From NCBI GenBank assembly GCA_964036045.1, contig OZ038378.1, positions 193,130,001 through 193,194,000 on the forward strand: a DNA stretch of 64,000 nt. Direction: 5' to 3'. The notes below the pieces were generated by a model. That model made no database searches. It was not told the origin of the DNA and was given only the letters and a program-made list of their open reading frames with translations. Each line of letters starts with the position of its first letter. Positions within the stretch are counted from its first letter, which is position 1. The DNA comes from Eutreptiella sp. 'Long Island Sound 2002' (taxonomy: Eukaryota > Protista > Euglenida). Shown here in pieces: positions 32,277 through 57,829 of the stretch. The position numbers and the translations under genes are program-made.

Positions 32277-32630
32277 TCAATCAAAGAAGCAAAAGCAGCA
32301 CAGCCGGTCCTCCACCCGCTTCACGGGCAGTGCGCAGTTGTGGGGCGAGCTCTGGACGTGCATCGCGCCGCACTTCGCGCACGCGAGTAGACTGGGCCGC
32401 GGCCGCGCCGCGGGCGGGAGGGCGTCCCTGGGGCTAGAGGCCTGCACTGACCCGAGGCTGCTGAGGCCGTACGGGGGACCGCTGCCCGACCCCCGGGCGG
32501 ACTTCTGGAGGACCGCCAGCGCCTCGGAGGTGTGCGTCGTCTGGACCCGCAGCTCCGTCAACTGCCCCTGCGCGGACAGCAGCTCCTGCTTCATGTTGGC
32601 CAGGTCACGCTCCAGCACTGCAACGTCGGC
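32277..32630 (-). CDS. Coiled-coil protein, terminal exon (ends …CAKC…HNC…LCCFCFFD)
   Basis: Acceptor cctctcag|GCC, phase 0. Heptad pattern ADVAVLERDLANMKQELLSAQGQLTELR. GC3-rich codons; TGA at 32279-32277. Confidence 0.78.
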   Translation of the reverse strand, partial: ADVAVLERDLANMKQELLSAQGQLTELRVQTTHTSEALAVLQKSARGSGSGPPYGLSSLGSVQASSPRDALPPAARPRPSLLACAKCGAMHVQSSPHNCALPVKRVEDRLCCFCFFD

Positions 32631-33400
32631 CTGAGAGGCAGTGCGTTTATGTCTCAGCAATTTGAACACACACACTCCCCGCCTAGGAGCGGGGTACAGG
32701 CCCCACACCAGAGCCCTCGCGGGTGGGTCTCGCCTCAATCTGAGGCAGGGCCATGTATCCCGAGCTGGCCAGGGTAGTGGACACGCCAACCAGGAGGAAA
32801 AGCGGAGCCCCACACCCTACACACGGAAGGGGGCCCCGACCGGGAGCGTGCGTGGGTTGGGGGGGGGGGGGGGTCCCCACTCCCCTTACACGACGAGTGA
32901 AAAACAAAATCTAATTGATACCTGAATCGCTGACGTGGCTCATCGGATCAGAGGCATCACTCCGCTCTTGAAAGAACAGCTCCTCCCCAGTGCCATAGGT
33001 TGGGGGGTCTCGAGGGTGGGGTGGGGGGTGTTGGGGACTGGTCCTCCACGGAAATGCCCCCCGTGAGAAGGATCCACACAACATCCAAAACCAATGTGCG
33101 CATGCGGTACTCGGAGTGTGAATGGTGGAGATTGTGGACTTTGTCGCCGAATGGTGAGGCATACCATTGCCACACCACGCCCGCAGTCTCAGGTTCCAGA
33201 GTGAGGAACAGTCATCTGCTGTAGAAACGAGTTGAGGGGACAGTTTTCCTTTTTCAAATAAAACACGTGAGGGGCCTACTTTCCCTGCAACGTACCAACA
33301 TACTAACGACAGCGGCGCGGCCATCGCGCAGCGTAAACCACCCAGGACACCCACACAGGTGCACACGCCACCTTCGTCGACCGCACTGAGGGAGGCCGGA

Positions 33401-33602
33401 CAGGGCTTCTTTAGAATAATTAAAAACCAAAGGGGGGGGGGACCCCTCCCCCAAAACCCCCACCCCCCCTCCCCAGACCAAAGTGACCATAGTGGGAAAA
33501 AACGAAATTTGCAAGAGGGAAAATCTGGTCGGGCCATTTTTGGTACACCAAGTTTTGGGTCCAAAACCCCCTCCCCCCCCCCCCTGCTCAAAAGAAGCCC
33601 TG
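33401..33602. mobile_element. hAT-like MITE (CAGGG…CCCTG), 202 bp
   Basis: 12-bp perfect TIR CAGGGCTTCTTT. Flanks AGGCCGGA / AGGCCGGG (7/8 match). Body homologous to 42666, 50453 and 51234, in reverse orientation. Confidence 0.8.
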
Positions 33603-33639
33603 AGGCCGGGGGACGTCCTGGAGCGTTCCTACGCTCTTG

Positions 33640-34048
33640 GACCTGGAGGACCGCCACCGTCCCCTGTGGTGGGGGGTTTGTGCCCCACGCGCAGGCCAAC
33701 ACGGCGGGGACGCACAGGGTGGACCCCGGATGGAGGGGCGGAAGTGTTGGTCCGCACGCACACGGAAACGCAGCGAGGCATGTGGTGTACAACCTGAGTG
33801 CGGAGGGGAGTGGGCAGCAAAGACCGTAAAACGACCTCCACACTGACCACCACAGCAACCAGCACAACCCCCGGTGTGCCAACTACTAGGCTCCGCCGAC
33901 GCAGAAACGACACCAGCAGGAACACAGACCGCAGCGGCCGTTAGAATACAGCGACCCGACGCAGCACGCGAAGGGAAGACTGGGTGACTGTCCAGGGCCC
34001 CGTAAAGAAACAGCAACTTGACGGAATGTCACACGGGGGGGGGGGGGG
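33640..34048 (+). mobile_element. Short copy of the terminus of the 43250 element
   Basis: GGGTGACTGTCCAGGGCCCCGTAAAG…GACGGAATGTCACAC followed by G14. Confidence 0.7.
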
Positions 34049-35806
34049 CAGCAAAAAGATTCTGGCTGGGGGGTCCTTTCCCACCCTTGGTGCAGCCCTG
34101 CCCCAGCCACCCGCCGCCCGAGTTTCGGCTGTTTTGCCTATGGTGTTGAGGGTGGGGTGTGTGCTCCCTCTGTCGTAGGCCCTGGGGTCCCCAGCAGCGT
34201 ACTGAGACTGAGGGCCTTATTATCTTGGAGCCCTCGCTCAAACAGGTCTGGCACTCTGGTCCGGCACACTTCTTCATCCTTTCAATTGATCCGTGTATTC
34301 CCCCTAAACTAATGTCAGCCAGCCATACCCCCCCCATATCTCTCAGGTACCCGGGAAACACGCCAACACAGGGGGCTTTTTCAGGGTCGGTGACATTGTT
34401 GCCTCTTCGCGCCCACTGAGTGTCCTGTTTGGGGGAGGGGGGGGATATGGGTATATTTGGAAAGCCCTTGAAATTTTGGAGGATTTGGAACACCCTGGGT
34501 CTGCATGCTGAACTAACGGTATAATAGAGAAAACTCGTCCGTTTTGGATGATGCATAATTTGCCTGCCGCCTTTCTTTTTGTCAACATTCACTTGCCATG
34601 TCGGCATCTAAATTCTCACAATGTAATGCCGCCCCCCCTGACGCATCACAGAAGCCTTTGGTCTGAAAAAGGACACGTTCTGAAGGTGTACAATGGGTTG
34701 GTGTGGCCCTGAACAGACCTGGCAAGGCAAAGGAGGCCGGCAATTCCTAGTGAGCCGCATTGACGTGGCCTCGGGGGAAACTGTGCAGCATGCACAACGC
34801 CAAAGTACACATGAAAGAGGGGTCACCTGACCACCTGTTTCATCCCTTACCGTGGTGCACTTGGGCAGTTTTGCAGACCTCAGTTGTTGCACTAGTTCCG
34901 CATCCTGCAGGTCCCCTAGCAACCCCCAACGCGCTGTCAATGGCTCATTTGAATGCCCTTTTCCTGCGGGTTTGAAAAAGCATACAGGTACCCCACATGG
35001 GGACCACATTTTTCCATATTGGAGTGAAACCTGCAAAAATTCCCAAGAAGTGCCAGTTTGCTCCATGGTGGCGCATATGGACGGTCCTGAGAGTTATGTC
35101 TGCCAAGCCAAAATGCTCTCCCTCACATCTAGTCAGATGGACCATGCCGGACCCCGTCACGAAACATGTCAAGTGTGCCGCGTGTTGTGAATGTCAACTA
35201 ACAAGAAAGTCTGAGATGGCCCGCACATGCGATGAGCATGCACACCAAGAGGCACTGCGATCGCACGAGCTGACGCGAGACGACGACACCGCACCACCAT
35301 GTCTGCCCATGAGTTCTGCCAGCACAGGAACAGCACCCAGGCCCCATTCGCACACCGGGCGGCCTTTGGGCTGCGTTGCACAACATCCGCCGTCCACACG
35401 ATGGAGGACTTCCATGAACCTACGAATAACCTTTTTTTTTCACTTGAAAATTCTTTAAACTTAATCCAGAGCCCAGATAAAAGGAACTTTCATTTAATTG
35501 GAAGGCTATAATACCCAAATTAATGTCTTTTAAAATTCTACATAACGGGCGTCGCACCACAAGGGTGCATCGGCGGCATTTCCTGACCCGTATGGCGCAC
35601 ACACTCCTCTGCGCTCTACAATCCCCCGTTCTCGAGCGTGAGGGGGCGTCCGGCAACAAATGGGTACGCAGTGCGCGCCGCAGTGCCTCGCAGTCCCTCC
35701 ATGCGTCAATGTGCCTCCACAGGGACGTGCAAGTGAGCTGTAACACATCGTGACGCGGGATGTGGGGAGCGGTGCCCCGCACATGCGCAAAGGGCGGTCC
35801 TTTATG

Positions 35807-35888
35807 ACCCCGTCTAGCCCCGTCTAACCCCGTCTAACCCCATCCAACACTGGCTAACCCCGTCTAACCCCATCTAACCTCGTCTAAC
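35807..35888. repeat. 10-bp tandem repeat (ACCCCGTCTA)n
   Basis: About 8 degenerate units. Confidence 0.85.
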
Positions 35889-36093
35889 AGTGCTTTGGAC
35901 TAAGAGCAGAGTGAGGTTTGGGGTAGGGTCCCGGGACTTTCAGTGGTACAAAACGTTTGCACTTTGTGTGAGCCATGTGCAAAGGTGTCCCCATGGGTGT
36001 ATGCAGGCCACTCACCAAATCACAAAAAAGTAATGGGCGCTAGATCAACCCTTTTGTACCCCTCCCAAGCGGGAGGGGGGGCACGGGGTCCAC

Positions 36094-36767
36094 CTGCTGC
36101 TTCGCCGCCTCACCACTCGTCTGCTCCAGACTCTTAGCGAGTTCCCGCATCCGGGCCTCCTTCGTCGCCAGCCGGGCCACGGCGCGCGCATACTGCGTCA
36201 TCCACCGCGCGTTCTGCGTCCGGAGCTGCTGCGCCTGAGCCTTCAGGGCGGGCAGCGCCTCGGGGTCCGCCGGGGGCTCGAGGGCAGCGTCGCCGGCCTC
36301 GCTGACGCACGGGATGTCGCTCATGAAGCTCAGCTCCGACAGGAGGTCCTGGTGGGATCCCGGGGACGCGGGCCCAAGGCCCCAGGTCCGGCTGCTCCCC
36401 CTCCGCTCCATCGCCGCGTCTAGCTCCTCTCGCGAGGCGCTGGCGTCCCACGTGCCGCTGCCCTCACGCACCAGCACCGCCTCCAGCTCGTCCTTCCGCT
36501 TGCGCTGCTGCTCGAGGTCGCGCTGGTACTGCCCCTTGAGCCGCGTGGCGTCGTCCAGCATCTGCGAGGCCCCAGACAGCGCCTGCTCGGCGACGGTCGC
36601 GCGGTCTTGGGCCTGCCGCATCTGTTGCCGCAGCTGGTCGAGGTTGTCGCCGCTGCCGGAGTTCCGCAGTTCGGTGGCCCCGGTGGGGGGGCTGCCCGAG
36701 GCCTCCGAAGGCATGCCGATGTCTGCGGAGGCTCCCTTCGTGCGGGTCACCGTCCCCACATCCGCTG
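36094..36767 (-). CDS. Coiled-coil protein, large upstream exon
   Basis: About 225 GC3-rich codons with heptads (LDQLRQQMRQAQDRATVAEQAL…). An in-frame TAA lies just upstream, so the exon starts at acceptor ccgacag|. Donor CAG|gtggac (phase 0) matches the 32630 acceptor. The 5' end of the gene is unresolved. Confidence 0.8.
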
Positions 36768-39460
36768 CTGTCGGTCGGGCCGGGCGTTACGATGGCGCGC
36801 ACGGAAGCATGGAGCGGCTAAGAAGCGCCCGGTGGAACGCAGTGTGTGGGAATGAAGCGCCGGATACTTAGCCTTATACCCCCAGGACACAGGTATACGA
36901 TCATTGCTCTTCAGAACTGTACCGAATGTTAAGTTGAGTTCATTGCCACAGCAGCTATCGAATATTTCTTGGGAACGCAGTGGAGGGAGGGGGGGGCACG
37001 GGGACTGCGGGGCATCGACGGTGTGGAGGGGGATGTTAGGGTGGAGGGAGGGGGTTGTAAGCATCCCCCGCCGGACTACTGCTTGGGTACCCCCATGAGT
37101 CACTGGCTGTGTAGCAGCCCCCTACTGCGCAGCACCACCTCACTGTATGCAAGGCCCTCCCTTACTCGCACACTCTCGCACTCCCGTACTGTGTGACAGC
37201 CCCCCCCCCCCCCTCTTTCCAGATGACAGTGCAAGCGCTAACAATGATGGGAACAACGTCTTTCATTGTTCTGACAAGGGCGCTGTTTGCACGCACCCTA
37301 AGAAAATACAGGCAATGATGAACATGCTCCGAAGGTAAAGCAATGGGCAGAATGGAGCAAGATGCACGCAGGGGAGGGGCAAGAAGTGGCAGGACTGCAA
37401 CCAGCACCCCCAAAGCATCATCCCCAGCCCCATATCATGCGGAAAACTTGACCTTCTTTGACAACCAGAAGAAGGACCGCCAAATTCGATGGCTCCAAAG
37501 GGTGCGGAACCTAAGTAGTCGATTAAGGTCCTGCACCCTGTGCACACGAGGGTTAGCTTAGAGGCAGGATGGGGCCGGGCCACCATGCCACCTCCCTCCA
37601 AAGGGTGCGGAAACTACACCTCTCGGGTTGTTCTGTCCAGGGCACTGTTCCCACAAGTGCGGTAGCCGCCCCCATCTGAACCCCCAGCTGCACAGCCGCC
37701 CCTGCCGCCCCTGAGTGTGCACCAGACTCTGAGTGTGCAGCACCCCCATGATAGTGTGGCAGCCCCTGAATGCATGCATTGCACTGAGGGGGGGCTTATG
37801 CACATTGAAGTTGGGATTGTCAGTCATGCACACTGGAGTAGGGGCGGCCTTCGCATTACAGTAGGGGGTGGGGGCGCTTGCGCTACAATGCACGGTGCTC
37901 GCAGTGTTGTCGCTACAGTGCAGTGTTGCCCCACACCGGATGGTTCTCGGCTTCCAGAAGGGGGTCGGATTGTGTGGTTCAGTTAGCATGCGATGCCTAA
38001 TGCCAATGTCACCCCTTCAGTATAGCTGAGGTACACCTGTTTACCCCACACTCTCCAGACACTGGTTTACTCGAGCTGATTTATTCAGTTGGCAGCAGAG
38101 ACGGAGGGGGGGTGGATAACACAAGCTTCTGATGCGGTCGTTCTGGGTCGTGCTGGCAAGACAGCATATGCAGATGGCAGTCTCTCCTTCCAGCATCATG
38201 CTGCAAATCCGATCAGGGGACGGGGAGGGGGGGGTCTGCGCCCCCTCCCTCCCAACCGTTCCCCCTCATGACAATTACGATTATCCACTCCACAACAACG
38301 GTGGCGTCCTCAAACAGCAAGCAGGGCAACGTGTCAAAAGTCCCGCCTTCAAATGCCAAAGCCGAATGCAAGCATCAGCACACATTTTCCATGACCCCAT
38401 TGCACGCAATCGTCATGATATGGGTGGCATCAATAAAATTCCACTGACTACCCACCTAGGAAATTTAGTACCTTGTGGAAAAAGCGGAATTTGGGGTCTA
38501 GGTAGTTGCCTAAGTACAAAATTTTTTTCCACTGTGTGACAAAAATGCAGTTGGGCATGTTCGATTTTTTGTCTGAATTTTATTTTTCCACTTTTCATAG
38601 TTCTTCTTTGTTCCTTCCCCTTCCTTTGTGCACAGCAATCCCTAGGTATTTGCCAACCCCGCACGCGTGGCAGCCGCTACGTGTGGACAGTTTAGGCACG
38701 ACTTGGTGTGACCACACCACTAAATACACATCACCAAAAAGCTATCTGTGTCCTCACCCCCAATGTAAATGGGCGGGTCAATGTGGGACAGGGCTATTGA
38801 TCAGTCCCTATGAAAGCGCAGATGCCGATTTTCTTATTGCTTCCAAAATGGCAAAAATGGTTAAACATTGAGCCCAAGAATCATGGGATTTCAAATGCAC
38901 AGAAAAAATCCGCCACAAAAGAGCACGGACCATTGCCTTGGACCCTCAGGGCTTTGTGTGGAGTGCTACGGTCAATCGCAATTTGGGGTGTGGCGGTCCC
39001 CAGGGGCGAGCTGTATTGTACGTTCAAACCCAGAGCCAAAGCAAGCACACATGAAGCAGCACAAACCAATGCCACTGCAGGCCGTCGTTGCTATTGTTGC
39101 ACTGCACACAGCAGCAAACACCAGCGGTCACCCCAAGTCGAAGCCGAAAGGCATTGCACGACCGCTTTGTGGGCGGCTGCCTCTCGCATAATGGCCCGCG
39201 ACGACTCTCTGTGTTGTGACGCATTGGCACTGGCACACCCGGCACTTGTCCTCAAGCGAACGGAATGCAGACCGACCTCCTGCCACAACTCAATGTTGGT
39301 CCGCGATTTCTGTGGGGCTTTGCATGAAGCTGTGCTCACAGCAAAGACCGCCTTCGGGTTAAGGTCAAAGAGCAGGGGGAGGGCATCTGGCAGGCCCCAC
39401 CAACACAATGTCCCTCCCCCCAACACACCCACCAACCACCGTACACCCACCCACCCACCC

Positions 39461-39501
<41 letters not shown>

Positions 39502-39713
39502 GGGAACCGCGAGACAAGAACAAAGCAAGAAAAGCGGTTGGAGAAAATTCCGCAGGAGCTGCAGAGCAGCCCTTTCGGTCTGTTGAAGTTGGACGGAGTG
39601 CGACGGAGTGCTGGCGTGCATAAGTGCATTCCCACTCCCTCATGCCGTCCCCAGACCCAAATAATTCCTGGAGGAGCCCGTGTCTAGTTGCCTACCATTG
39701 CCTCTACATTTAC

Positions 39714-39747
<34 letters not shown>

Positions 39748-40220
39748 TAGAGAGAGAGAGAGATCTACTGGTCCCCAGTGGGGACATGGGGCCTGGGGTT
39801 AAATTGTAGGCATGCGCTAACGTTGGACCACCTGAACGGGGCTGTGCGAGGACCGAACCTCGAAGGCCGGCGACAGGAGATAAGCGCGTCAAAGCGAGCA
39901 CGCCGGAAGAGAGAGAAAGAGAGAGGGAGCGGCCCAGGTGGCAACAGGGGACAGCAATCTCGTGCCCTGGGGTGAAGTACTGCTGGCCGACCTCTGAGCG
40001 TACGCGACCCCATCCCCCAGTACGGACACCTGCAGCGGTGCCCTCAAAAGGAAATCGGACTGCATTTCTGGGCCGGTGTAAGATATCCCACTCAAGGGTA
40101 GAGGTAGAGGTAGAAGACCCGGGCCTTCTTCAGGCACCGGAAGACCGTCATCAGCCCCTTCTGACTCGTGGGGTCACCGAGGACACCCTACCGCTTGAGA
40201 CGGCTTAGCCTATATGTTAA

Positions 40221-40295
40221 CGCCCCATCTGGGACTCGAACTTGGTGCCTCTTGGGCAGGCGTCATGTGCTGTTACAGCTGAGCCACGCGACCTC
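40221..40295 (-). mobile_element. tRNA-derived SINE-like element, second copy
   Basis: Reverse complement GAGGTCGCGTGGCTCAGCTGTAACAGCACATGACGCCTGCCCAAGAGGCACCAAGTTCGAGTCCCAGATGGGGCG aligns end to end with 18921-18994. Confidence 0.6.
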
Positions 40296-40859
40296 CTGAT
40301 CCCACTCGAGGATGTGAAAGCCGTTGCCTGCGCCTCGACGCCAAGCGCTCCTGCCAAGGGCAGAAAACAGCTGCAACCTACCGAAATGGGCCCGAACTTC
40401 TCAGTTGGCGTGGGGGGTGGGACGGGGTGGGCGTGCGCCGAGCCCCAGCATGGACGTGATCCGGAGGACGCCCGGTCTCCGACCCGGGCGTCTTCATGGC
40501 ACTTCATGGGACTTGGGCCGTTGTGTGTCGGCCCCCGCCTCTGCGACAAAGCGCCTGGGCCCCCCGCCCCCCGGCGGGTGCCGAGGGCCTCGGACCGGCG
40601 GCGTGAAGGGCGCAGGGTTGAGGGTGCGAGGGCCACGGCGGTCCCGCACATCACAGCGTCATGCTGCCCCCCTCCTCCCCACTCTCCCCGTGGCGTCCAG
40701 TGGGTCGGTGCCTCGAGCGGGGTTGCGTCGATGGTGCAAACGGGGCTCGAGAGGGTGCCGTTCCCCGACCGCCCGTTGGGCTGAGGCTGGGGCGCGACAG
40801 CCCCCGCCGCCGGCGCACAGCGCGACCCGACACTGCGGACGCCGCGCGCTCTCTGACCG

Positions 40860-41370
40860 GAGAAGGGGATGCTTCGAAGGCGCGGGGCAGCGCCCCAGGC
40901 ATGCGCCTGAGGGAGCCGGGGGCTGGACGGTGCTTTCGAAAGGGGCTGCCAAAGCGGTTGCTGGCGGTTGGAAAAAGCGGTTTTGGGGGGTGAGCAATGT
41001 CCGGCCGTTGCCAAACAGCGGCCGGGCGGACGGAATTGCCATTTCGAGGGGGATACCCAGGCCTGCGCTTGAAGGGCAGGGGTGGCACGGGTGGCACAGC
41101 GAGCGCCTGTAGTACCGGTTGGCGGTCGGGAAAGCGGTTTGGAGCGCAGTTGGACGACCGGTGGAGCCGAGTCGAGTCCAGAAGGACACGGCTGGGGCGG
41201 AACGGGTGGGGTACTGCAGAGGGGGGCCGGGGTAGTGTGGCAAACAGCCGTAAAACCGGTCGGCGACGGTTGGTAAAGCGGTTGGGGAGCAGGAGGCGGT
41301 TGCACAAGCGTTGCAGCCGCAGTTGGAGTCGGAGGATTGCGGTCGGAGCGTAGCTGACATTTACGGTTGC
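40860..41370. repeat. Dispersed GCGGTTG/CAACCG-rich repeat family member
   Basis: Recurrent AAAGCGGTT(G/T)G motifs. Related stretches at about 54230-54320, 57430-57530 and 57960-58080. Confidence 0.5.
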
Positions 41371-41805
41371 CCCCCCCCCCCCCCTCCCCCTTCCAGCGCA
41401 GCCTCCCCCCCACTGTGGGAATGTGATTGAGACAGCCCGTGTACCTCTGGGGCACAAAGCGGGAGCCAGGGCAACAATCAAGTGAAAAGGATCATCGGTG
41501 ACCTGTATGTCATGGGCCCCTTTCACGAGAAAGCAAATAGCCCCCCCCCCCCCCCCGGTCCCCTTGAGGCGCAGGTGTGGCAGTACGCCCACTTCCCTCC
41601 ACGCGCATGCCCCGCAGTAAACCCCTCAAGAGGCTTCCATCACAAAACTCTCGACGGTGCTGCTGTGGGCCCACAGTAGTGGGCCCGCATGGAAGGGGCC
41701 AGAGGGCGCAACTCTTGGAGAAGTCCCGGTGACACGTCGACACGCGTGTGCTTCCGTCTGAATCAGCTCAAAGTACCTCTTCCACCGGTTTTCGCCCCCG
41801 CCCCC

Positions 41806-41885
41806 TGTGCGACATCCCGTCGGGTTGCGTTTTCTTTACGGGGCCCTGGACAGTCACCCGTTCTTCCCTTCGGGTGCTGCGTCGC
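41806..41885 (-). mobile_element. Very short copy of the terminus of the 43250 element
   Basis: TGTGCGACATCCCGTCGGGTTGCGTTTTCTTTACGGGGCCCTGGACAGTCACCCGTTCTTCCCTTCG, preceded by C-runs. Confidence 0.7.
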
Positions 41886-42470
41886 CCCCTCTCCCCCGTG
41901 AAGAGGGATTTATTTTACTTTGCAGTCCGACAGCCCCCCTCCCCCCCTCAGCTCCAGGTCAGGCGAAAAGCACGGTTCCGGGGGCATTTCTCAGTGGCAC
42001 CAAAAGCTTTTTCTCGGGCACCTGCGGGGCCCATTGAGGAGTGGTGCGTCGTGATCAACATGTACCCAACGCTGTTTCTGTTACAGACGTCCGTATCCGT
42101 ATCCCCCGGGGCTGAGTGGGACACTGTCCAACAAATCCGCTGTTTTCCGCGCCCGGGAGACGTTCCGACGGGGGGTGGGGGGGGGAGGGGCTCCCCGCGG
42201 GTCCCCCTCCCGCCCTCCCCCGCTCAAGCAAACCCCCCCCACCCCCACGCCCCCGCCTCCCAGCACCCGACCTTTTTGCCTGGTCCACCACCAACGGCCG
42301 GCCACTCGCGCTAAACGCCGACGATTGAGCGCCAACCACCGTCGGCCGCCGCGGCGCCCTTTTGCCACTTGGGAAACTCTTCGGGGGGGGCGGGGAAAGG
42401 GCTCCTCAAGACCGCCTCAGGACGCTGTGCGCGCCGCTGTGTGCGAAAGTGCAGCCTGAACCGGCGCGCG

Positions 42471-42644
42471 TCATTTGCGTTTCTTCTTCTCGCCCCGGAT
42501 CTTCTGCACCGTGTTCCCGAACTTCTGCTCGTTCTCCTCGCGCTTGCGCTTGAGGGAGCCCTTCTTCCGGTCGGGCGCCGCCCCCTGCGTCTTCTTCGTC
42601 TCCTGCTTGCGGCGCACCATCTCGCGGCTCTGCTCCTTGCATTC
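42471..42644 (-). CDS. DDX47: DEAD-box RNA helicase (DDX47/RRP3 type), terminal exon
   Basis: Acceptor ccccccccag|GAA, phase 0. Lys/Arg-rich tail ECKEQSREMVRRK…KKKRK*. Confidence 0.8.
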   Translation of the reverse strand, partial: ECKEQSREMVRRKQETKKTQGAAPDRKKGSLKRKREENEQKFGNTVQKIRGEKKKRK

Positions 42645-42665
42645 CTGGGGGGGGATGGGCAAGGG

Positions 42666-42856
42666 CAGGGATGTATTAAAAGAGAGGAGGGGTGGGGGGC
42701 TGGGACGCAAACATTTGTGTACCAAAAAATGGCCCGACCAGATTTCCCTTTTGTGAATTTCGGTTTTTCCCACGATGGTCACTTTAGTCTGGGGGGGTGG
42801 GGTCTAGGCGGGGGGGCACTCCTCCTACGGTTGTCAGCCGTTCTAATGCATCTCTG
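42666..42856. mobile_element. hAT-like MITE (CAGGG…CTCTG), 191 bp
   Basis: TIR CAGGGATGTATTAAAAG versus CAGAGATGCATTAGAAC. Flanks GGCAAGGG / GGTGAGGG (6/8 match). Confidence 0.78.
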
Positions 42857-45044
42857 GGTGAGGGGAAGGTGGCAGCCCAAGAAGCAGAGGGGCGGTGTCT
42901 GGATGGGGGGGGGGGGCTTCTGGCTCCGAGGGGGTGTCCAGGGATGCATTGGAAAGGGGGGACCCCCCCCTTCAGGGTCTGCAGCCTAGCGTCCGGCTGC
43001 TCTCTTCCTCTTTCTGCCCCTCCCCCCCCCCCGCTCACTATGGAGAGGAGCCCAGTACCTGGGATGTGCTTGTCCACGGGGGGTTGATCTGGAGGACCCC
43101 CCCCCCCAGGCCAAACCACCCACCACCCAAACCCAAAAGATTTCCCTGTGGGGTAAAAATGAAAATTTGAATGTAGAGCCAAACAGGAGAGGCCCGTTTT
43201 AGGTACACAAACTTTTTTTTGCACTCATTACCCCCCCCCCCCAGCCCCCTGTGTGACATTCCGTCTGGTTGTTGCTCCTTTACGGGGCCCTGGACAGTCA
43301 CCCGTTCTTCCCTTCGCATGTTGCGTCGGGTTGCTGCTTTCTGTCGGCCGCTGCGGCTGGTGCTCTTGCTGGTGTCGTTTCCGCGTTCGCGGAGCCCAGT
43401 AGTTGGTGTGTTGGGGCTGTGCTGAATGTGGCATGGCGTGCCGTTTGCGCGTCACCGGCGCCCAATAGTTGGCGTATTGAGGATGTGCTGGTTGTTGCCG
43501 GGGTCGTTTGACTGTTTTTGCTGTCCACGCGCCTCTGTCCAAAGGCCGTCTGTAGCCTGCCTCGCTGTGTTTCTGTGTGCGTGAGGCCCAGGTGCCCTGT
43601 TCCTCCACACGCTGTCCCAGCCGTCCACCATATGTCCTTTTCCCCCTCCACAGCTGGACTGCCCCTGATGGGCTCCCGTTCCTGTTGCGCAAACAGCCCA
43701 TATGGGCTGCGGAAGACACCCCCCACTTGATGCCGGTTGAGCAGGGGTTGCCCTGGCACCCAGTAGCGCCGGGGCTGGCTGGCCATCCCCTTTGTTGTCG
43801 CTGCCTCCCATGCGCATGCTCTGCCATCCGCTAACTTCTGGTTCCCTGTTCCCGCTGTTCTGGTTGCCTCTCTTGCCTTGCTGTGCCCCTCCTCCTTGTT
43901 TGTTGCGCCCGCCCTTGTCCCTCCTGGTGTGGCTCCCGCGTTCTGTGTGTCTGTGTTGCTCCTCCCCATGTCTATTGGCGCTCCTGGGTGCCCCTGTCGC
44001 GCAACCACTCCTGTCCCACCCGCCTACCCCCCTGTACGAGGGCTTCACATCTCCGTACGACGTGGACTGTCCCGTGCGCGATTGGCTGGTCACGGCCCTG
44101 TTGCCAACCCCGTGGCGGGCACCTCCCGGCGCGCGGGGCACAGTTCCCACCCTTGTGGAGTACGTGGGCACCTTGTAGAGGGAGGGGGGGGGGGGGTTGC
44201 CGATGGCTCGCTCGGCGTGCGCCGTATTCAGTGGTTGCTGCAGTGCTTGCACCTCATGGTTCCCTTGTGTATTGTTGCGTTTCCTGTTGGGGCTCGTCTC
44301 ATTGCCATGTGTGGGGCGGCTTTGTGCCTAGTTGCTTTGCTGCTTGCGTTCCTCCCAATTTCGGGCTCTTTCTTTTTCTCCTGGCACGCTCATTGCTGCT
44401 AGTGTGCGGCGCCGGGGGGGCAACATGTCGCTCCTTGCATCCCCTTGTGGCTGTCGGGTTGTCCCACTTGCAGTTGGGTGGTACCAGGGGCACCAGGCAC
44501 TTTTGCACATGTCTCCAAATTTACAAACTGACCTGTCACCGGTGTTTGTTGGGGTTGTTCTGGGGTGAATGTGGTGCATTGTTGCTCTTTTGCTTTCTGG
44601 GCTGCTAAGGGGCTCCCCGTTTGACGACTTCACTCCGGGTTGTCCACGCCTCGGAGCTAGGGACTCGTGTGAGTCCACCCCCTAGTTGGTCGTGTGCAGT
44701 GACCACCAATGGTTTGGACGTTGTGTCTCATAAGTGTGCCCAAGGGCCCTGCACTAGGCCCTGGTGATAGAACTTAGCTACTCGCGGGCAGTACATGTTT
44801 TAGGTCGCTGCCCAATGGACAACCGTGTAGCCGGCTACCAACCCCCCGGAGGGGTGACCCCCTTGCTGAGGTTTGGGTTGCCTTCTCCTCCCGTTGTGGC
44901 CGGGATGGTGATGGCTCCCGGGAGTGCATCAGGGAAGCATCCCTTCTATGTTGTGTGTAGGTGTGGCCTTGGTTGTTGCGTGTGTGGTGGGTGCCGTGTT
45001 GGCGTTGGGGCGTGGGGTCGTGGGCCCTTGGTGATGCTCCACGT

Positions 45045-45845
45045 GCGTGCCTTGTTTGTGGGCGGCGGTGGCTGTGCATGGGTGAAGTGCCCGTGTGGTG
45101 GGTCTGGCCCCCACCCTGGGTGTTGGGTGTTGGGCTGGTGTTGGTGCTTGCGGCGGGTGGTGTGGTTGTCCGCGGCTGTTGTTGTTGTACACTGTTGTTC
45201 TGTGTGTTGCGTGTTGTCGTGTGCTAGCGCGTTTCATTGTGTGCCTCTGCCGGCTTTGGTCTGCTGTGTTGCGTTGTGTGCTACGTTGCCTCCTCTTTGT
45301 GCGCTACACTGCCTCCGTGAGGCGTGGCAGCCGCGGCTAACCGCCCGTTGGGGCCGAGTTCGGGTAACCTCCGAAGCGCTTGGATAGGGCCGCCCACCCA
45401 TTGGCGGGGCCGAGTCTGAGCCCCCGGGGCCTACCTTTGAGGCTTGCGCGTGCCTTGTTTGTGGGCGGTGGTGGCTGTGCGTGGGTGAAGTGCCCGTGTG
45501 GTAGGTCTGGCCCCCACCCTGGGCATTGGGTGTTGGGCTGGTCCTGGTGCTTGCGGCACGTGGTGTGGTTGCCCGCCGCCATTGTTGTGGTACACCACTT
45601 TGCTTTGTTCTGCTATATTGTGCGCTACGTGCTTTCGTGTGCTGGCAAGTTTCGCTGTGTGCCTCTGCCGGCTCTGGTGTGCTGCGCTCTGTTGTGCGCG
45701 GCACTGCCTCAATGAGGCGTGGCGGCTGCGGCTACCCGGGCAAGGCCACTCTTCCCGTTGGGGCCGAGTCCGGGTCACCTCCGAAGTGCTTCGATAGGGC
45801 CACCCACCCATTGGTGGGACCGAATCCAAGTCCCGGGGCCTCCCT
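45045..45845. repeat. About 400-bp tandem duplication within the element
   Basis: GCGTGCCTTGTTTGTGGGCGG(C/T)GGTGGCTGTGC… at 45045 and 45448. Both copies end in CCCGTTGGGCCGAGT…CACCCATTGG…CCGGGGCC. Confidence 0.85.
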
Positions 45846-46477
45846 AAGAGGTTTGTGTGTTGTTCTCCTTTGTGCGCCTCTGTCAGCTTTGTGTGCTTGG
45901 GCGTTGTGCTGCCTTGTGCCGCTCTAATGTGCGTTGCGCTGCATTGTGCTGCATTCAGTTGGATCTGCGTGCCTGGGCGTTGTGCTGAACCCCTCAACGC
46001 CTCTCGGAGGCTGCCGCGATTAACTTCGCTAGGCGATAAGTGGGCAGCAATTTGCCCGTCTCTCCTAGTAGGTCCCCGTCTATGTGCACAGACGGTTGCC
46101 ACTCTCCATGTGTGTAGCACACCCCATGTGGGTGGCAGCTACACTGCGGGGTATACACACCAACGGCCACAATGCGCACTCGGACCACCGGCATCATGAG
46201 TCCTGGGGCATATGAGGCATCACACCTCACCCCTGGTCATGTTGAGCATCGGCGTGTAGGCCAGCTGCCACTCGCGGGCCCGTGCTATACTTGTATACTG
46301 TGCGTCCATGAAGCCCACGGTCACGTTTGCAAAGCGTCGTTGCATTGTCGGTGTGTTTGGTTCCCCTGGCCTTCTGCCCTCCTGTCTAGGGTCGTGTGTC
46401 GCAGCTCCCCTATTGCTGTGGCGTACCTCCCGTTGTTGGCGCCTGTCCCCTCTTTGTATGTCGGTGCCGTGCTGTCT

Positions 46478-46681
46478 TCAGGCCTCTGTGTCTAGCAGTC
46501 CGTCCTTTGCCTTCCGTGTTTGTTTGAATAGTCCCTCAGCCTTCTCCTTGTGGTGCGCGTTTTTGTCTGGGTGTGGCTTGACATTGAGCTGCTTGTATGC
46601 CCGCTTTATTTCCTCTGTTGTGGCCCCAGGGTACCGCACTCCGAGCACCTGGTACCGGTTCCCTGGCAGAGTGTCTGGCAT
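46478..46681 (-). pseudogene. DnaJ (J-domain) coding segment within the decayed element
   Basis: NRYQVLGVRYPGATTEEIKRAYKQLNVKPHPDKN…AEGLFKQ…AKDGLLD: canonical J-domain helices and HPD motif. Confidence 0.85.
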
Positions 46682-48799
46682 GTCCGCGACTGGGTTCTAT
46701 CCTCTGGTGTGTGGGACAGTTGGTTGGTTGGCCCCCGCTAGCTGGGGCTTGCGCTGGGGCTGTGGTTTGGGGGCCATGTTTGTCGTTGGCCTCTCCACTC
46801 AGACGACATTCGCTCTCTTTACGCGAATTTCCCGTCCTTGTGTGTGCCGTGGCCCCTTTGTTACGCGCACCTGCACTCTGAAGCCGTCATGCCCCACCAC
46901 CATGGCCTCACATGCGTTGAATTCCACCTGCCGCAGCCCTTGCAGATTCACTGCTGCTCCAGGAACAAAAGTTTGGCTCACAGGGCTGCGGAGGGCAAAA
47001 CTGAATGGAGCAGAAGGGAGCGTCCAAGGGGAGGATAATGGCCAGGTTCTAGTGCAACTAGACCACCAAAAGGGAGGCAGAACAGTGGCAGTCATCCACG
47101 ACACTTGAGCAGCCTGCCCCAAGGTAATGGCAGTAGTATGGGTTGTCGGGAGCAAGCTAGTAGCCCGCAAACAAGGAGAGCAGGAGCACAAAGGCATGAC
47201 AGGGCGCCGGTGACGCCACCTGCAGCAGCCCCCCATGTGGAGGCGGCCGTGTTAACATTGGTAGCAGGCGCAGCAGTAGTGGTGGTGGGTAGCGCAAGGC
47301 ACCTTGCGACGGGCTGCCACCTGTCTTGGGCCACCGCCTGCTCCCGGTTCTGTTTCATTATTGCTGCCCTTCGTTGTCTAGTGGCTTGGTCATGGCTCTT
47401 CTGCCACTTTTTGAGCCTGTGTACGAGCACCTGCGGGAGGTTGCACTCACAAAATAATGCCCCTATTTTTTCATTGATGCACCTATGCCCCCACAGATAC
47501 ATTGTTTGGCGTTGCGCACGTACTTCCCGGCGGTCTTCACGTCGTCTCCATAGAGTAGGCACTCCACACGTCCTTTTCCCGGCACTGTCCCCGCCGACAT
47601 AAAATCCGCCTTCCAGATGCGGCATTGCGCACACAACCACACCCCTAATTTTCCTCCATCTTCGCTCGGCGGTGCGCACTGCCTGTGGTCGCATGTGCCA
47701 CACCCATGACATGTGTATCGTGGTTCTGCCCCTGGTGCAGTGCATAATTTCACATCGCATCACCTTGTTTTGCCTTCTTTCTACGTCGTCTCCGGTGTTT
47801 GCTGAGTTTGCTGTGTCCCTTGCCTATGGCCCTCCTCTTGTGCTTCTGCTCACCCATCCTCTTTGATATTCTGCACAAGTATCTGTCCCTCCACTGTCCG
47901 GCCTGGGGTGTCCTCCATCTTTTCCAGCAAATTGCGCTTCATCCCTTGGCCCGTCTGTCGCGTCTCTTGTGGGTGCATTTCGTTCCACACTCTCGCCAGA
48001 GCGTGGAATAGGCACAGCCCATCTAGTGGCGTCTCGAAGATCGTCGTCGTCTCTGGGAGCTCATCTTCTAACTGCCCTGCGCCCTATCTCACCACGTTAC
48101 GCCGGCCTAGTGCCTGGCGCAGTTGCGATGCCACCCCCGGCGGTAGGATATTCCAAAAATTGCGTGCCCCATGTGCTGTCTCACCCAACACCTGCACACG
48201 GGGTGGCAGGCGTTGGGAGTGGTGGCAGGAACTGTGGTGGCTGCGGTGCTACGAGTCGTGTCCCGCATGGGATGGAACGCACAGGGGTTTCTATGGGGCA
48301 TGAGTCATACAACGTGAAATGGGTGCGGGGTGCAAGTTTCAGACACGACAAAGGAGGGGTTGCTGGTCCATGTGGTGGAGGGCACACCAAGTCAGGGGGA
48401 TGAACAAGCAGGCCGCATGCTAGAAGTACCATGAGGGGCGTTCTGGGGGTTGGGCCTTGAAGGGACGGCGCCAACACACACAGAGCAGACATTGCCCCGC
48501 CACCAGCCGGAGCACTCAAGGGAAGATAGCGAAGTGGTCCACAGGTCAGCAAATGAGACGTTGGTATGGGGTCTTCTGCGGCTGTTCACTATGGGGGTTT
48601 TGTTTCCCCTGGTGATCGGCTTGAAGCTGGGCCCTTGCCAACCAAGCCCGGGTGACTGTGCCTGCAATGGGTGTCTCTTTTGACCCCTGCCTTGTCTTTG
48701 CGCTTGCGGTGTGGCCCCGATTGCTGTAGTGCAGAGCGCTCTCGCTGTGTCTATTATTGTCCTGCACAATTTCATGTTGTTGTTGTTGTGCTTGCTGAT

Positions 48800-48997
48800 G
48801 GTGTTGATGTTTGATGATTCCTGCTCCTCCCAGTTCCATGCCTCCACGGTTGCTTGCTTCATTCTCTCTAATAATAGCTTCTGGTCAAAACATTGGTACA
48901 TAGCGGTGAAGTCTACCGTGCGTGCCGTGCTCCGTTGGGTGGCCACCTTTCGCGCTGCGAACCACAACAGTTGCGCCACCTCTTCTACTGATTCCAC
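48800..48997 (-). mobile_element. Fragment of a reverse transcriptase, probably Penelope-like
   Basis: RTVDFTAMYQCFDQKLLLERMKQATVEAW resembles the PLE-type RT motif-A (DFxxMY) region. No YxDD motif follows. Confidence 0.45.
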
Positions 48998-49361
48998 AAA
49001 CTAGCACCGCTTTGCATGCCCCTGCCTCCGTCGCACTGCGTCTTTTGCTTGTAGTGTGTGCATTACTGTAGACAGAACACCCACCAATTCGTCCCCCGCT
49101 CCAGCCAGGCTTCTCTGTGCGTCCCTGGGGTTTTCCTATTTGCTTTGCGCCCCCCCCCCCCCAGCCCCCCAGCCCCACCCCGTCCCGTAGGCCAAACACT
49201 AAGCACAACCCTGCCCAGTACTTAGACCACCGACGTTTATCGCACACGACTGCCCACAGCATCCGTCCACATGGGGTGCTCTTCCCACCTCAAAACTGTG
49301 GTGTGCGGCGCCCGATGCCTTGACAGCGCACGTGAGGGCCTGCACACCACCAAGACAGTAC

Positions 49362-49491
49362 CTGGGCCGCCTCCTTGTCCGCATCGTCCACACGGGGGAA
49401 CAGAATGCCGATTTCCTTCTCGTTGACGGGGAACTCCGTCATCTTGAGCCCGATCAGTTCCTCGATCTTCTGGATCTGCAGGACGTCATAC
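49362..49491 (-). CDS. DDX47: DDX47/RRP3, penultimate exon
   Basis: YDVLQIQKIEELIGLKMTEFPVNEKEIGILFPRVDDADKEAAQ resembles DDX47 YDVELFQRIEHLIGKKLPGFP…RV. Boundaries ctgcag| and |gtactg, phase 2 to 0. Confidence 0.9.
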
Positions 49492-50452
49492 CTGCAGCAG
49501 CGGGGCGAGGCAGAGGGGCAAAAATGATGGGCGCAGGTCGTTCGGTGGGACAACACCGGGTCCGGCCCACAGCCCGGCCCTGGGCTTGCGACCATTGCTT
49601 GGTCCAGGGGCAAGGGAGGTTCTTAGAGGGGGTTCAGCAAAGGGGGTGCTAATCCTGCGGCGCCTACGGTGCCTGCGGCGCGCAATTTGGGTAATTATCG
49701 TGGAACAGGAGAAATGGTACCCTTTGTGAAGCGTACTTTTGAATGGGGAGTGGTTATCGCAACACTTTCGTCCGTTTTGAGTATTATGCCTCGCAATTGT
49801 GCCCGTTTGACCTACTTCCTTCACCCAAAATTGAGGAAAGTCAATGCAGTGCTAATTGCCCTAAAGCTAATTGCCCTTACCCTGCGGCACTGCGACACAC
49901 AGTAAGCGCTCCCAAAGGTGCGGGGGGGTTGTACACATCAAAATGATCGCCGGAACGTGCTGATCATTCTGCGGCACACATATGGGCGGCGGAGTATCAA
50001 GTATCTGCGGTGGGATTAGGGTGCCCCGGCTGGTGGAGCACCCCATACCATGCAGACATTGAGTTTGCCCTCGAACCAAATGGAGGCGGCATGTCTCCAA
50101 GTTGCACAATCAATGAGCACATCGTAGTTTGGTAACCCCCATGAGCATGGCATGTCGATGATGTGCAACTCATTCCTGCAGTTGTACCTTTGCTATCATG
50201 TCATGCTCGCAACACATGTTTCTAGGATATGCAACTTGCTTTTTGTATTAAGCCACATCAAAGGACTTTTCGCGTTTAGGCTGGTGGTCCCCAACGGAAT
50301 CGCAAACATGCAACAAAACCTCCGGAGGAAATTGCAGCTCGGGTCACCGGCACCGATTTCAGAAGTCCACCTTTTCTCCCGATGAATGTTTTATCACGAT
50401 GCACTTTCCGTCAACGAGCAGGAGAGAGGGTTCTCCCTTTTTTGGTCCGGGG

Positions 50453-50639
50453 CAGGGATGTATGAGAAGAGCGGGGGGGGGGGGGGTTTCTGGAACCCAA
50501 AAATTTGCGTACCAAAAATAGCCCAAATCAATAATTTCCTTTTGTAAATTTCATTTTTTCCCACTGTGACATCTGGGTCCAGGAGGGAGGGTTACCCCCC
50601 CCTCCTCCTATGGTTGTCAGCCCTTCTAATATATCCCTG
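50453..50639. mobile_element. hAT-like MITE (CAGGG…CCCTG), 187 bp
   Basis: TIR CAGGGATGTATGAGAAG versus CAGGGATATATTAGAAG (15/17). Flanks GTCCGGGG / ACCTGGGT (4/8, weak). Confidence 0.72.
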
Positions 50640-51233
50640 ACCTGGGTTGTAGTCCATCCCCTGAGGCGGGGAGGGGGGGGTGAGACTCCGCCACAATCTG
50701 TTCCCACAGGCGGGCACAAGACCTGCGGCACAAGACCCGGAACCGCGAAGTGGGGGTGTGGGTGTGGGTGTGGGCGGTGGGTGGGGCGGACAGACGCTGT
50801 GGAAGGCGCAACGCGGGGCCCGGGGGTTCCGGATCACCGAGTGGGACACGTTCGGTGGTGTGCTGCTTTCGAGGTTGAAAAATGTCATCCGCGCACGGGA
50901 ACAGGCGCAACCCACTGCACGGTTCCCCGTCGATCGATATATGCTCTGTCGTCACCAAATGATGGCGACGTCAAGCCCGGCCCAACGCCACCAGGAAGTT
51001 CTTTGAGATCACTGGACAACCGGCCTGAAAAAGTTCCTCATCGGAGGAATTCAGCCTGCCCATGCGGGGTCATCATTCGGTGACAATGGGAGCACGAAAA
51101 AGGCCGTGCGGAGCCACGTAGCATCCGCTGGGCCCACTTTTTGGTGTCCATGCCTGCGAAATGGGCCAGTCTCAGCCTATCTCAGCCCGTTCGTAGGTGA
51201 GACATTCAGGCCACTGTGGGGGGGGGGGGGGGG

Positions 51234-51893
51234 CAGGGAAGCAATAGAAGTGGGGGGGGGGGGGAGGCAAAATTTTTGTGTACCAAAAATGACCCGACAA
51301 AAAATTCTCTATTTGTAAATTTCACATTTTCCAACTACAGGGGGGGGGGGGGGGAACTTCGCGGCGGGATTATTTCGCCATGGGATATTTCGCAGTGGGT
51401 TTATTTCGCATGCAATCTTGAATTTGCTGTGGGAAATTTCGCACCCACATGCTGTGAGCCGACCTTTGGTTGGTGCTGGCTGTGGACGAGACTGCTGTCA
51501 ATTATTTTCCATCCCTGCAAAGAATGTAGCAAGCTGCAGGCAAAGTTCGCAAGTGTACCTTGCGTACAGCAATGAGAAACGTACGATCACAAGATCCCCC
51601 ATTACAGATTCTGACGGCAACATTTCTCTGTTTCAGCTCTTGTGGAAGGGCACAACAGACAAGACATTTTGTTAAATTTCGCAGCGGGTTTACTTCGCAC
51701 AGCGGCCTGAAAATTACGTGGGAAATTTCGCACGAATTTGAAATACGAAATATCCCACGGCGAAATAATCCCGCCGCGAAACCCCCCCCCCCCTGTATGA
51801 TCACTCAATTGGTCTGGGAGGGGGGGAGGGCCCCAGTGGGAGGGGGGCACCCCCCCTCCTCCTATGGTGTGCGGCCATTCTAAGACTTCCCTG
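51234..51893. mobile_element. hAT-like MITE interrupted by a nested TA-flanked MITE
   Basis: TIR CAGGGAAGCAATAGAA versus CAGGGAAGTCTTAGAA. Removing the insert and one TA restores the family body (…TTTTCCAACTATGATCACT…). Confidence 0.78.
51338..51795. mobile_element. Tc1/mariner-type MITE, 458 bp, TA target-site duplication
   Basis: TA|CAG(G)n…TTCGCGGCGGGATTATTTCGCC(A/G)TGGGATATTTCG, mirrored at the right end over about 45-55 bp and followed by |TA. Confidence 0.88.
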
Positions 51894-53353
51894 ACGGGGG
51901 GACAACTCCTCGGGTAAACCATCCGTGGGGTACATCATTTTCATTTCTCGCTCTACTCGGGTCACAGAAAGGGACGCAGGTGACGCCAGACACTGCCTGC
52001 CTTCTGTCGCACTCGGGGGCATGCGCTCGCATGGGCACAGTGCTGCACGCCGCCTTCTCACCCCCAAAACGGTGATGCCGAGCTCCGACAAAGCCACGCA
52101 AAACGGAGCGGGGGACTCTCAGCGCCCGTCCCTGGGGTTGGCCCGTGGCCCTTTTCGAGTGCTGCTGCGGTCTTCCCCCGGATGACTGGTCTTCCGTCTG
52201 CCGGCCGTATGACGGGGCAGACGTGATTTGGGGCAGGGATGGGCCCCTTCCTGCGCTCGGCCCCGGTGGTGCAGCGGCCATGCCATATGCCGCGGCCCCC
52301 TACAGGCAACCGTCGGTGACTTGTTGGGTGACCCCGGACCACAATGATCAGCAGTGGTGTGGTGCACTTGGGGGGGGGGGGGGGAGTGGCATGACGCCCG
52401 GTTTGTGCTGCTGTCTGAAGCTGACGGCGCCTATTGGCCTCTCGCCACTTTGCCCTGCCCTTTCCTTGAACCCTTTCCCTCCGCAGACCACCTTGTGCCC
52501 TCTCCCTGCCTGGCCTATCCTCACCTCCCTACTCACCCTTTGTTTCCCTTGGGAAGTTGTACCAACTGAGGCCCCGGACTGTCCCCGTTTCACTGCTCCG
52601 TGTCGGGTCCAGGAGGCCAACCGCCCTCGCCGTTGGCCAGGTGCGTCCAAGTGGACACCCCAAACCGCCGGTGGGGGATCCCTCCCCAACGGCGGCTGTT
52701 TTTTAAGGAGTTCGGGGGGCGTCCTAGACCCCAGGGTTTGTGTGGGCAAAGAGAGCGCAAAACTGTGTTGTCGTGGAGTGTTCCTTCCCGCGGCAGATTG
52801 TTATGTCGGACCCGCGGGGGCGGGGGGGGGCGGGGAGGCCCGGGCCCAGGCCCAGCAAGTTTCCCGCTTGGGACTTCCGGATGTGTGCACCGGTTTGAGT
52901 TTTTAGGAGGACTATGTCCACATTGCCTGTCACACACTGGGGAGCCGTATTTTCAATCGGTGAGAGCGGGACACTTGTCCCTCTGCTCAAATGCGCTGCT
53001 TCCGCCCACTCGGCGTCCCTCCAGCGCCGGCGATGCTCCACACAAAGTCTCTTGCAAAACCTTGAAGTTTGGAGCTCAACGCCACATCTCACGTGGGACA
53101 TGCAACACAGGGCCCAGGGGGTTCTGGCCGGGGCGTGGGGGGGGGGGGGGGAGGATAAGGGGCTGCTCCACAAAAAACATATCATTCCAGATAATCAGGG
53201 GCGGTAGGGTCCTTCCGCCCGGGGCTCTCCCTTATTCGGCCGCGGCAATCAATGCGGCAGTACTTGCCACACAGGATTGCGCAGGGCACGGGCCTTGGAG
53301 CGTGCAACGCCAGCCCCGAACACAGAGGCGGGGTCCGCAGGGGAGGTGCATAC

Positions 53354-53423
53354 TGCGTCACAAAATTCACTGCCAGCCCACTGCGCCCAGCACGTGCCGT
53401 ACGCCCAACACGGTGGATGTAGT
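53354..53423 (-). CDS. DDX47: DDX47/RRP3 exon with helicase motif VI
   Basis: DYIHRVGRTARAGRSGLAVNFVTQ. Boundaries gtcgcag| and |gtatgc, phase 1 to 2. Confidence 0.95.
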
Positions 53424-53696
53424 CTGCGACGACAAGCGTGTGACCATGCAGTAGACAGGGCAAAAGTGGAAGCAGAGGACAAAAAAATGGTATGCGGGTG
53501 ATTGTTTTGCAGCTGCAAATTGCGAGCACAAGTTTTTTTGACTGACGAGGAATTTTAAAAAATTTAATAAAAAAAAACAGAACAACCCCCCCACCCCAAA
53601 AAAATGTGATGCGAGTGCGGCTCCCTACAAGTGTGCGACACAGTTTTTTCTGGTTGCTTGTGCTCTGCTCCGGAGGCAGGACTTGTGCAGGCGTAA

Positions 53697-56028: not shown

Positions 56029-56145
56029 CCTTGACGGACACTGGCAACGAATAGTTGATCACACAATCCACGTTCGGAATATCCAAACCTCTGGAGGCCA
56101 CATCAGTGCCCACGAGTACCTTGACTTTGCCTTCTTTGAAGCGCT
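56029..56145 (-). CDS. DDX47: DDX47/RRP3 exon with helicase motif V
   Basis: [39 protein letters not shown]. Boundaries ctgcag| and |gtatgc, phase 1 to 1. Confidence 0.95.
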
Positions 56146-57723: not shown

Positions 57724-57829
57724 CAAGAGCCAACTCGCGCTTGTCCTGCGACATGGCCCCGTAGATCGGCAGCGCCTTCATGCCGATCTTGCGCAGCATC
57801 AACGTCATCCGCTTAACCAGAGCGCACGC
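57724..57829 (-). CDS. DDX47: DDX47/RRP3, most 5' exon found in the window (region after motif IV)
   Basis: ACALVKRMTLMLRKIGMKALPIYGAMSQDKRELAL resembles DDX47 LLRNLGFTAIPLHGQMSQSKR. Boundaries cccccag| and |gtacgt, phase 0 to 1. Confidence 0.9.

Follow-up and report, generated by a model that had tools for sequence, protein, structure and literature searches.

An abundant family of probable hAT-type MITEs in Eutreptiella has the end geometry of euglenid nonconventional introns

Introduction

Nonconventional introns of euglenids carry CAG at positions +4 to +6 and CTG at -8 to -6, together with repeats described as 'TIR' (terminal inverted repeat) and 'TSD-like' (target-site duplication) (PMC11282704), and they make up 72% of the introns of Euglena agilis (PMC12501133). 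Knock-in experiments in E. gracilis show that splicing requires both the CAG and the CTG motif, that the 3-nt 5′ spacer is intolerant of any change in length, and that both the 5-nt 3′ spacer and the identity of the first exon base, which should be a purine, are important; synthetic 50-nt introns combining these rules with 12 complementary bases are spliced in Euglena (PMC12501133). Where these introns come from and how they are removed has been open for 30 years. Here we describe a family of short elements, probably MITEs (miniature inverted-repeat transposable elements) of the hAT type, in DNA of the euglenid Eutreptiella sp. 'Long Island Sound 2002' (assembly GCA_964036045.1, contig OZ038378.1, positions 193,130,001 to 193,194,000). 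This stretch of 64,000 nt is called the window below, and coordinates refer to it unless a fetched locus (L-number) is named.

A MITE-like origin of nonconventional introns was proposed in 2014, by authors who noted that transposons were not yet known in euglenids, and was repeated in 2016, 2024 and 2025. Our full-text literature searches found no paper naming hAT, stating that the TSD length equals the two spacers (8 = 3 + 5) or describing free Euglena MITE families, and the literature searched names no free-living donor transposon family. Only the specific link to hAT and to the 8 = 3 + 5 rule appears to be new, the general idea having been published. The window and related loci supply concrete candidate families with the right ends, a TSD equal to the sum of the two required spacers and one young, abundant subfamily, and with these families the hypothesis becomes directly testable.

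Two further systems invite comparison. In maize, the TIR of Ac/Ds is (C/T)AGGGATGAAA and the TSD is 8 bp (PMC3260210). The elements described here share with Ac/Ds, especially the short Ds1-type, that TSD length, a TIR start of the form (C/T)AGGGATG, the existence of short non-coding derivatives that resemble one another little beyond their termini, and a preference for genic regions; they differ in their protist host, in an interior rich in G/C homopolymers, and in that no autonomous partner is identified. Maize Ds has been spliced from transcripts as a de novo intron, according to the account of Giroux et al. 1994 given in PMC3935182. Ds is removed by the ordinary spliceosome, which uses cryptic sites and leaves a scar, in contrast to the scarless removal envisaged here. 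Introners (in Micromonas, dinoflagellates, Polarella and others) are likewise DNA transposons with TIRs and TSDs in which the TSD supplies part of the exact RNA removal. Unlike our family, they consist of numerous near-identical copies, each itself an intron with spliceosomal GT/AG borders, whereas none of the copies examined here is an intron and the removal considered would putatively be non-spliceosomal.

Homologous elements with CAG...CTG ends and matching flanks

A first-pass annotation of this DNA, made from sequence alone, had placed homologous elements at four positions, and blastn, MAFFT and nhmmer all bear this out. E1 (33401-33602, minus strand), E2 (42666-42856, plus), E3 (50453-50639, plus) and E4 (51234-51893, plus) match one another by blastn at 66-77% identity with E-values of 1e-8 to 1e-30, and an nhmmer profile recovers all four with E = 1e-18 to 1e-57. 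The same profile finds an additional, partial and diverged copy, E5 (43073-43262, minus), which covers only profile positions 23-163 and has lost both termini, as well as a weak match at 59046-59206. An Rfam search of the 64-kb window gave no match.

E1 to E4 begin with CAGG(G/A) and end with C(C/T)CTG, as had been claimed, and the MAFFT consensus of the window copies reads CAGGGATGTATTAGAAG...CTTCTAAT..ATCCCTG. The ends are also complementary, over 15/18 positions in E1, 13/16 in E2 and 18/22 in E3. E1 is full-length, with a TIR beginning CAGGGCTTCTTT, while the TIR of E2 begins CAGGGATGTATTA. E4 owes its length of 660 bp to a second, unrelated element nested at 51338-51795 (no strand assigned). 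This insertion has a TIR of ~57 bp, a self inverted repeat at 88% identity by blastn, and CAGGGG...CCCCTG ends. It has duplicated only TA, since where it sits the consensus of the family, CCCACTATGGTCACT, shows TA just once; it is therefore a Tc1/mariner-like MITE, and CAG...CTG ends are accordingly not confined here to elements with 8-bp TSDs.

The reported agreement between flanking 8-mers was reproduced exactly. The flanks of E1 (33393-33400 and 33603-33610) are AGGCCGGA/AGGCCGGG and match at 7/8 positions, those of E2 are GGCAAGGG/GGTGAGGG and match at 6/8, and those of E3 match at only 4/8; the 6/8 match of E4 is uninformative, both of its flanks being poly-G. A chance null built empirically on window sequence has a mean of 2.08 matches, with P(>=7) ~0.001; against it, the joint probability of the matches at E1 to E4 is ~3e-7, or ~1.5e-5 without E4.

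The family duplicates 8 bp of its target

Because the window alone is thin evidence, other copies of the family were sought in the genome. A spurious open reading frame (ORF) running through E1 served as the query against a protein collection. The 20 ORF 'proteins' that matched all come from a single ENA assembly, which also contains the window DNA. We fetched nine loci from these matches, and each holds one copy that is 89-97% identical to E1, with eight of the fetched copies at 91-97%, which places E1 in a young subfamily. E2, E3 and E4 represent an old subfamily, with 65-75% identity to E1 and among themselves. Family copies are non-coding and 187-211 bp long, and the window has five of them, with eight or more at other loci; the TIR is 12 bp and perfect in the young subfamily and spans 12-18 bp across copies. 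Word depth in DNA sequencing runs reaches 32,000-53,000 over E1, against ~22-31 in unique flanks. This ~1000-fold excess suggests, as a rough estimate, that near-identical copies number a thousand or more.

Ten more full or near-full copies or sister elements from the same genome were used to determine the length of the duplication. Within the young subfamily, four copies have perfect 8-mers at their flanks: GGGCCTGG/GGGCCTGG at L004, TTGAGGGC/TTGAGGGC at L006, GGGCCCTC/GGGCCCTC at L010 and, read on the plus strand, CCGTCTCC at L007. Two copies match at 7/8 positions, namely E1 and the copy at L005 (CCCATAGG/CCCGTAGG), one (L008) has a 9-mer repeated at 9/9, and two are aberrant. In copies with perfect 8-mers a ninth base never prolongs the repeat, the 9-mer at L008 being the sole exception among all copies. 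The mode is thus 8 bp, and we regard the length of the family's target duplication as settled; the earlier reading of these elements as hAT-like MITEs with an 8-bp TSD is upheld by the flanks of the fetched copies.

CA(G/A) termini with 8-bp duplications recur in unrelated families

The family's ends are CAGGG...CCCTG, and the CAGGG start, common to all copies, fits the hAT terminal consensus YARNG. The old subfamily shares its start, CAGGGATG, with the maize Ac/Ds TIR. A cut-and-paste transposase would have inserted each copy, duplicating 8 bp of target as it did so.

We scanned ~190 kb (the window plus the fetched loci) de novo for inverted repeats bordered on both sides by an exact direct repeat, and obtained counts of 1 for k = 7, 10 for k = 8 and 2 for k = 9, some of them artefacts of palindromic arrays at L005. 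After inspection, all clean elements with perfect 8-bp TSDs begin with CA(G/A), and the 12 termini most frequent in the whole set of inverted-repeat candidates do not include CAG. They include three sister families, unrelated in sequence, that have CA(G/A)...(C/T)TG ends and perfect 8-bp duplications: L010 3347-3814 (CAGGGGTGGATATA..., TSD CCACGCAA), L003 9236-9506 (CAGAGTTTTGCTTA..., TSD CGGGGGAC) and L007 5105-5848 (CAAGCATGTGCAGC..., TSD TTGATGAC). A shifted-register control of a looser TIR and TSD scan was spoiled by the L005 arrays, and only individually inspected elements count here. The arrays, at L005 5443-9304, form a long nested or tandem palindromic structure (CCCTCCAAGGATTCA... and ATGCGATGAATCC...) that is a source of false TIR and TSD calls.

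Together, these observations point to a family of non-autonomous hAT-type DNA transposons, passengers in conventional introns at this locus, to which we assign a probability of roughly 80%. Several observations weigh against this reading. The copy at L002 has no flanking repeat, and that at L003 (10276-10474), of the E1 type, is missing its last 6 nt (GCCCTG) and has a 16-nt direct repeat, AATGCGGGGCTGGCGG, at its flanks. No autonomous partner with the family's termini was found in the window or the fetched loci. The hAT target consensus nTnnnnAn is not evident in the six good TSDs (GGGCCTGG, TTGAGGGC, GGGCCCTC and others), a small sample. Over 31500-37499, the region of E1, an RNA run (X1) covered only a 36-nt repeat. 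Finally, two exons of the host gene described below, at 49.4 kb and 42.5 kb, were assigned without a database match; with the 49.4-kb exon as query, a protein search returned only the genome's own ORF, and PDB nothing. Membership in another superfamily that makes ~8-bp TSDs (P, Mutator-like, Zisupton or others) is improbable: the family is not linked to a transposase, one copy has a 9-bp duplication and the hAT target consensus is not evident, but the CAGGG/CAGGGATG termini match Ac/Ds and the TSD mode is exactly 8 bp.

Family copies with a readable setting lie in conventional introns or beside exons

Four of the five window copies lie in a DEAD-box helicase gene (DDX47/Rrp3-like; 42471-62924, minus strand), along whose exons the Helicase_C profile is collinear. 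The readable exons are at 62862-62924, 62079-62198, 57725-57829, ~56028-56146, ~53353-53426, 49362-49491 and 42471-42647, the last ending with a stop at 42471. Two of them match collinear parts of Helicase_C, a third has motif VI, and all joins are in frame. The exons at 49.4 kb and 42.5 kb we take to belong to this gene, going by the C-termini of DDX47/Rrp3 proteins and by the in-frame GT-AG joins. A search for proteins homologous to a helicase exon returned only the genome's own ORFs, and metagenome contigs gave no exact match to patterns taken from one helicase exon and the start of the C2 gene.

GT...AG borders could be read for introns with donor 57724 and acceptor 56146, donor 56027 and acceptor 53426, donor 53352 (GTATGC) and acceptor 49492, and donor 49361 (GTACTG) and acceptor 42648, all on the minus strand; the five helicase junctions that surround the copies all have such borders. 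The third of these, of 3.9 kb, contains E3 and E4, and the fourth, the last intron, of 6.7 kb, contains E2 and E5; from the borders as read, both pairs thus lie inside conventional introns. On the minus strand, 18 nt separate the CTG end of E2 from the AG acceptor of the last exon, which lies downstream of it. E2 to E5 would be expected to leave the helicase transcript together with their two host introns. E1 lies between two coiled-coil-like ORFs, and no recognisable exon adjoins it.

The fetched loci give a similar picture. The L003 copy is in a conventional intron of a PreP gene, by its read borders, and ends ~27 nt upstream of that intron's conventional acceptor. The L002 copy lies beside a WD40 gene and the L010 copy beside a SPRY-like gene; both are close to exons and never coincide with an intron. 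Three copies near exons sit within larger introns. Across the window and fetched loci we found no family member between exons, and none of the ~15 copies looked at constitutes an intron by itself. All introns in the genome sample whose borders can be read by homology, ~12 or more and including those of the helicase and of PreP at L003, are GT-AG. An ab initio search for CAG...CTG introns with coding flanks was dominated by low-complexity matches, its codon model being weak. Sequencing runs X8 to X10 over 31500-37499 are genomic DNA, with flat depths of ~30, 22 and 4. The suggestion that the family could be a source of self-removing introns is not supported by the window copies, E2 to E5 being nested in GT-AG introns and E1 standing without an adjoining exon. 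What the window contains is ordinary intronic hAT-type MITEs.

One helicase intron, from ~62861 to 62205 on the minus strand, between ...VEVSAKY and TVDTLTQQ..., has no GT/GC-AG solution that would leave the conserved residues in frame, and its best reading is AG...AG. The CAG/CTG geometry could not be fitted to it either, and its borders are not fixed; it could be nonconventional or intermediate. Upstream of it, at 62935-63160, there is a strange change of frame around an LFSA motif.

The elements match the published cis-code of nonconventional introns

The geometry of the elements, as first proposed, agrees with the published CAG/CTG motifs, the 3- and 5-nt spacers and the ~12-bp stem, both by comparison with the literature and by RNA folding. 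The underlying arithmetic is correct: 3 + 5 = 8, and removing an element together with the 3 nt before it and the 5 nt after it leaves exactly one TSD. With borders set at -3 and +5, CAG at +4 to +6 and CTG at -8 to -6 follow by construction. In RNAfold predictions for N3 + element + N5, CAG and CUG are paired in 13/14 folds (copies by orientation), mostly within an uninterrupted stem of 11-13 bp, in agreement with how the synthetic introns spliced in Euglena were designed. The likeness to nonconventional introns thus extends to the CAG/CTG pairing, the ~12-bp stem and the direct repeats at the borders, with identical geometry when the borders are placed at -3/+5. The copies differ from such introns in that they are not located between exons, with excision and circularisation being predictions only, and in that E1 and E4 have no purine after the 5-nt spacer on the transcribed strand. 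On the minus strand that purine is present at E2 and E3, in agreement with the earlier count of two in four; whether it is there is set by the target site only.

In either orientation, the transcript of an element would read N8-CAG...CUG-N8 with a terminal stem of ~12 bp, which is the cis-code of nonconventional introns. An exonic insertion would be expected to be cut 3 nt ahead of CAG and 5 nt past CUG, leaving no scar, if base 6 of the TSD on the sense strand were a purine. We infer from the published code that these MITEs may be spliceable in either orientation, given a purine at TSD base 6.

A published, recently gained intron has the predicted repeat

Gain within a species is known for a single nonconventional intron, intron 4 of gapC in E. 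agilis strain ACOI 323 (PMC4770533 Table S3). It reads GTCCC/aacCATTACCTTG...CAAGGTATGgtccc/AACCTC, where / marks the exon-intron borders (GTCCC/aacCATTACC...GGTATGgtccc/AAC in the repeat and its immediate surroundings). Its 8-nt repeat, GTCCCAAC, comprises 5 nt of exon and 3 nt of intron on the 5′ side and 5 nt of intron and 3 nt of exon on the 3′ side, and directly adjoins an inverted repeat. The register of 3 and 5 nt predicted from the MITEs matches this repeat exactly. Milanowski et al. 2016 attributed it to double-strand-break repair; it can be reinterpreted as a TSD instead of a repair scar.

We also counted by hand the matches between 8-mers in the same register at each of the ten nonconventional intron sites listed in Tables S1-S3 of PMC4770533. 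These sites average 3.3, 3.2, 1.7, 4.2, 2.3, 2.2, 3.0, 3.8, 4.2 and 8.0 matches of 8, with a mean of 3.6/8 against ~2.1 by chance, a comparison in which the strains are non-independent and the register is partly circular, since slidable borders had been placed by the authors with the same consensus. The matches concentrate at the two bases that flank the junctions. The E. agilis nonconventional introns in these tables mostly start N3-CAGG(G/A).

Could such MITEs be a source of nonconventional introns?

A link between these MITEs and nonconventional introns is a well-founded, testable hypothesis, strengthened by the 8-bp TSD, the sister families, the folds and the gapC case. A stronger version, to which we give somewhat less than even odds, is that this family and its sister families with CAG...CTG ends and 8-bp TSDs actively generate nonconventional introns in the manner of introners, many existing introns being decayed copies. 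Exonic insertions would be tolerated because the nonconventional machinery removes the element plus 8 nt exactly. The published cis-code coincides with the geometry of TIR and TSD, and the gapC repeat stands in the predicted register beside an inverted repeat. The excess of same-register matches over the ten positions and the N3-CAGG(G/A) starts in E. agilis, like the TIRs here, agree with this, as does the presence of four unrelated families with this architecture in ~190 kb. A young subfamily with perfect TSDs, moreover, implies recent activity.

Several facts speak against such a role as generator. None of the ~15 copies is itself intronic in the required sense: E2 to E5 and the L003 copy are in conventional introns, the L002 and L010 copies are beside exons, and the rest lie in unassigned DNA, while every readable intron is GT-AG. 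The gapC intron has CAT...ATG rather than CAG...CTG ends. The circularity in border placement noted above applies here, and the preference for Y/R seen at the two junctions might reflect a signal for cleavage and not the relic of a TSD.

Taken further, euglenid nonconventional introns in bulk may be insertions of hAT-type MITEs. The non-spliceosomal machinery would read the TIR stem and cut inside both TSDs, 3 nt upstream and 5 nt downstream, leaving no scar; exons would then be safe landing sites, which would explain why gain continues. We consider this generalization conceivable, with the balance tilted slightly against it.

The match could alternatively be coincidental, the elements being ordinary MITEs, nonconventional introns arising by other routes, for instance double-strand-break repair or a change from the conventional type, and the stem of CAG and CTG being purely a splicing signal. 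The published explanation of the gapC repeat is of this kind, and in a set of 87,843 non-slidable nonconventional introns CAG/CTG is described as only 'relatively weakly conserved' (PMC12501133). CTG...CAG or CAA...TTG ends also occur in some nonconventional introns. The element nested in E4 likewise combines CAG...CTG ends with a TA-only duplication, so that an 8-bp duplication need not accompany CAG ends. Such a coincidence nevertheless seems rather unlikely to us. Two independent numbers agree, the terminal trinucleotide and a spacer sum of 8; the 5′ spacer does not tolerate changes of length in experiments; and all clean elements with perfect 8-bp TSDs start with CA(G/A), although CAG is outside the 12 commonest inverted-repeat termini.

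Other features of the window and fetched loci

A very high-copy motif (...TGACTGTCCAGGGCCCCGTAAAG...GACGGAATGTCACAC, then poly-G) occurs in the window at 33975-34035 and 43245-43300 and at L003 ~10000-10100. It adjoins E5, and its distance is ~380 bp to E1 and ~200 bp to the copy at L003. Its word depth is 100,000-174,000 in DNA runs, and of the sequence at 31.5-37.5 kb RNA run X1 contains nothing else.

Three long ORFs at 46308-48997, inside the last helicase intron and in a region of strong A/T strand skew, have no Pfam match at E <= 0.01. At 689-1253, ORFs on both strands encode tandem units of ~33 residues (VATDRLLCAPPCVCTAF...), indicating a tandem DNA repeat of ~100 bp.

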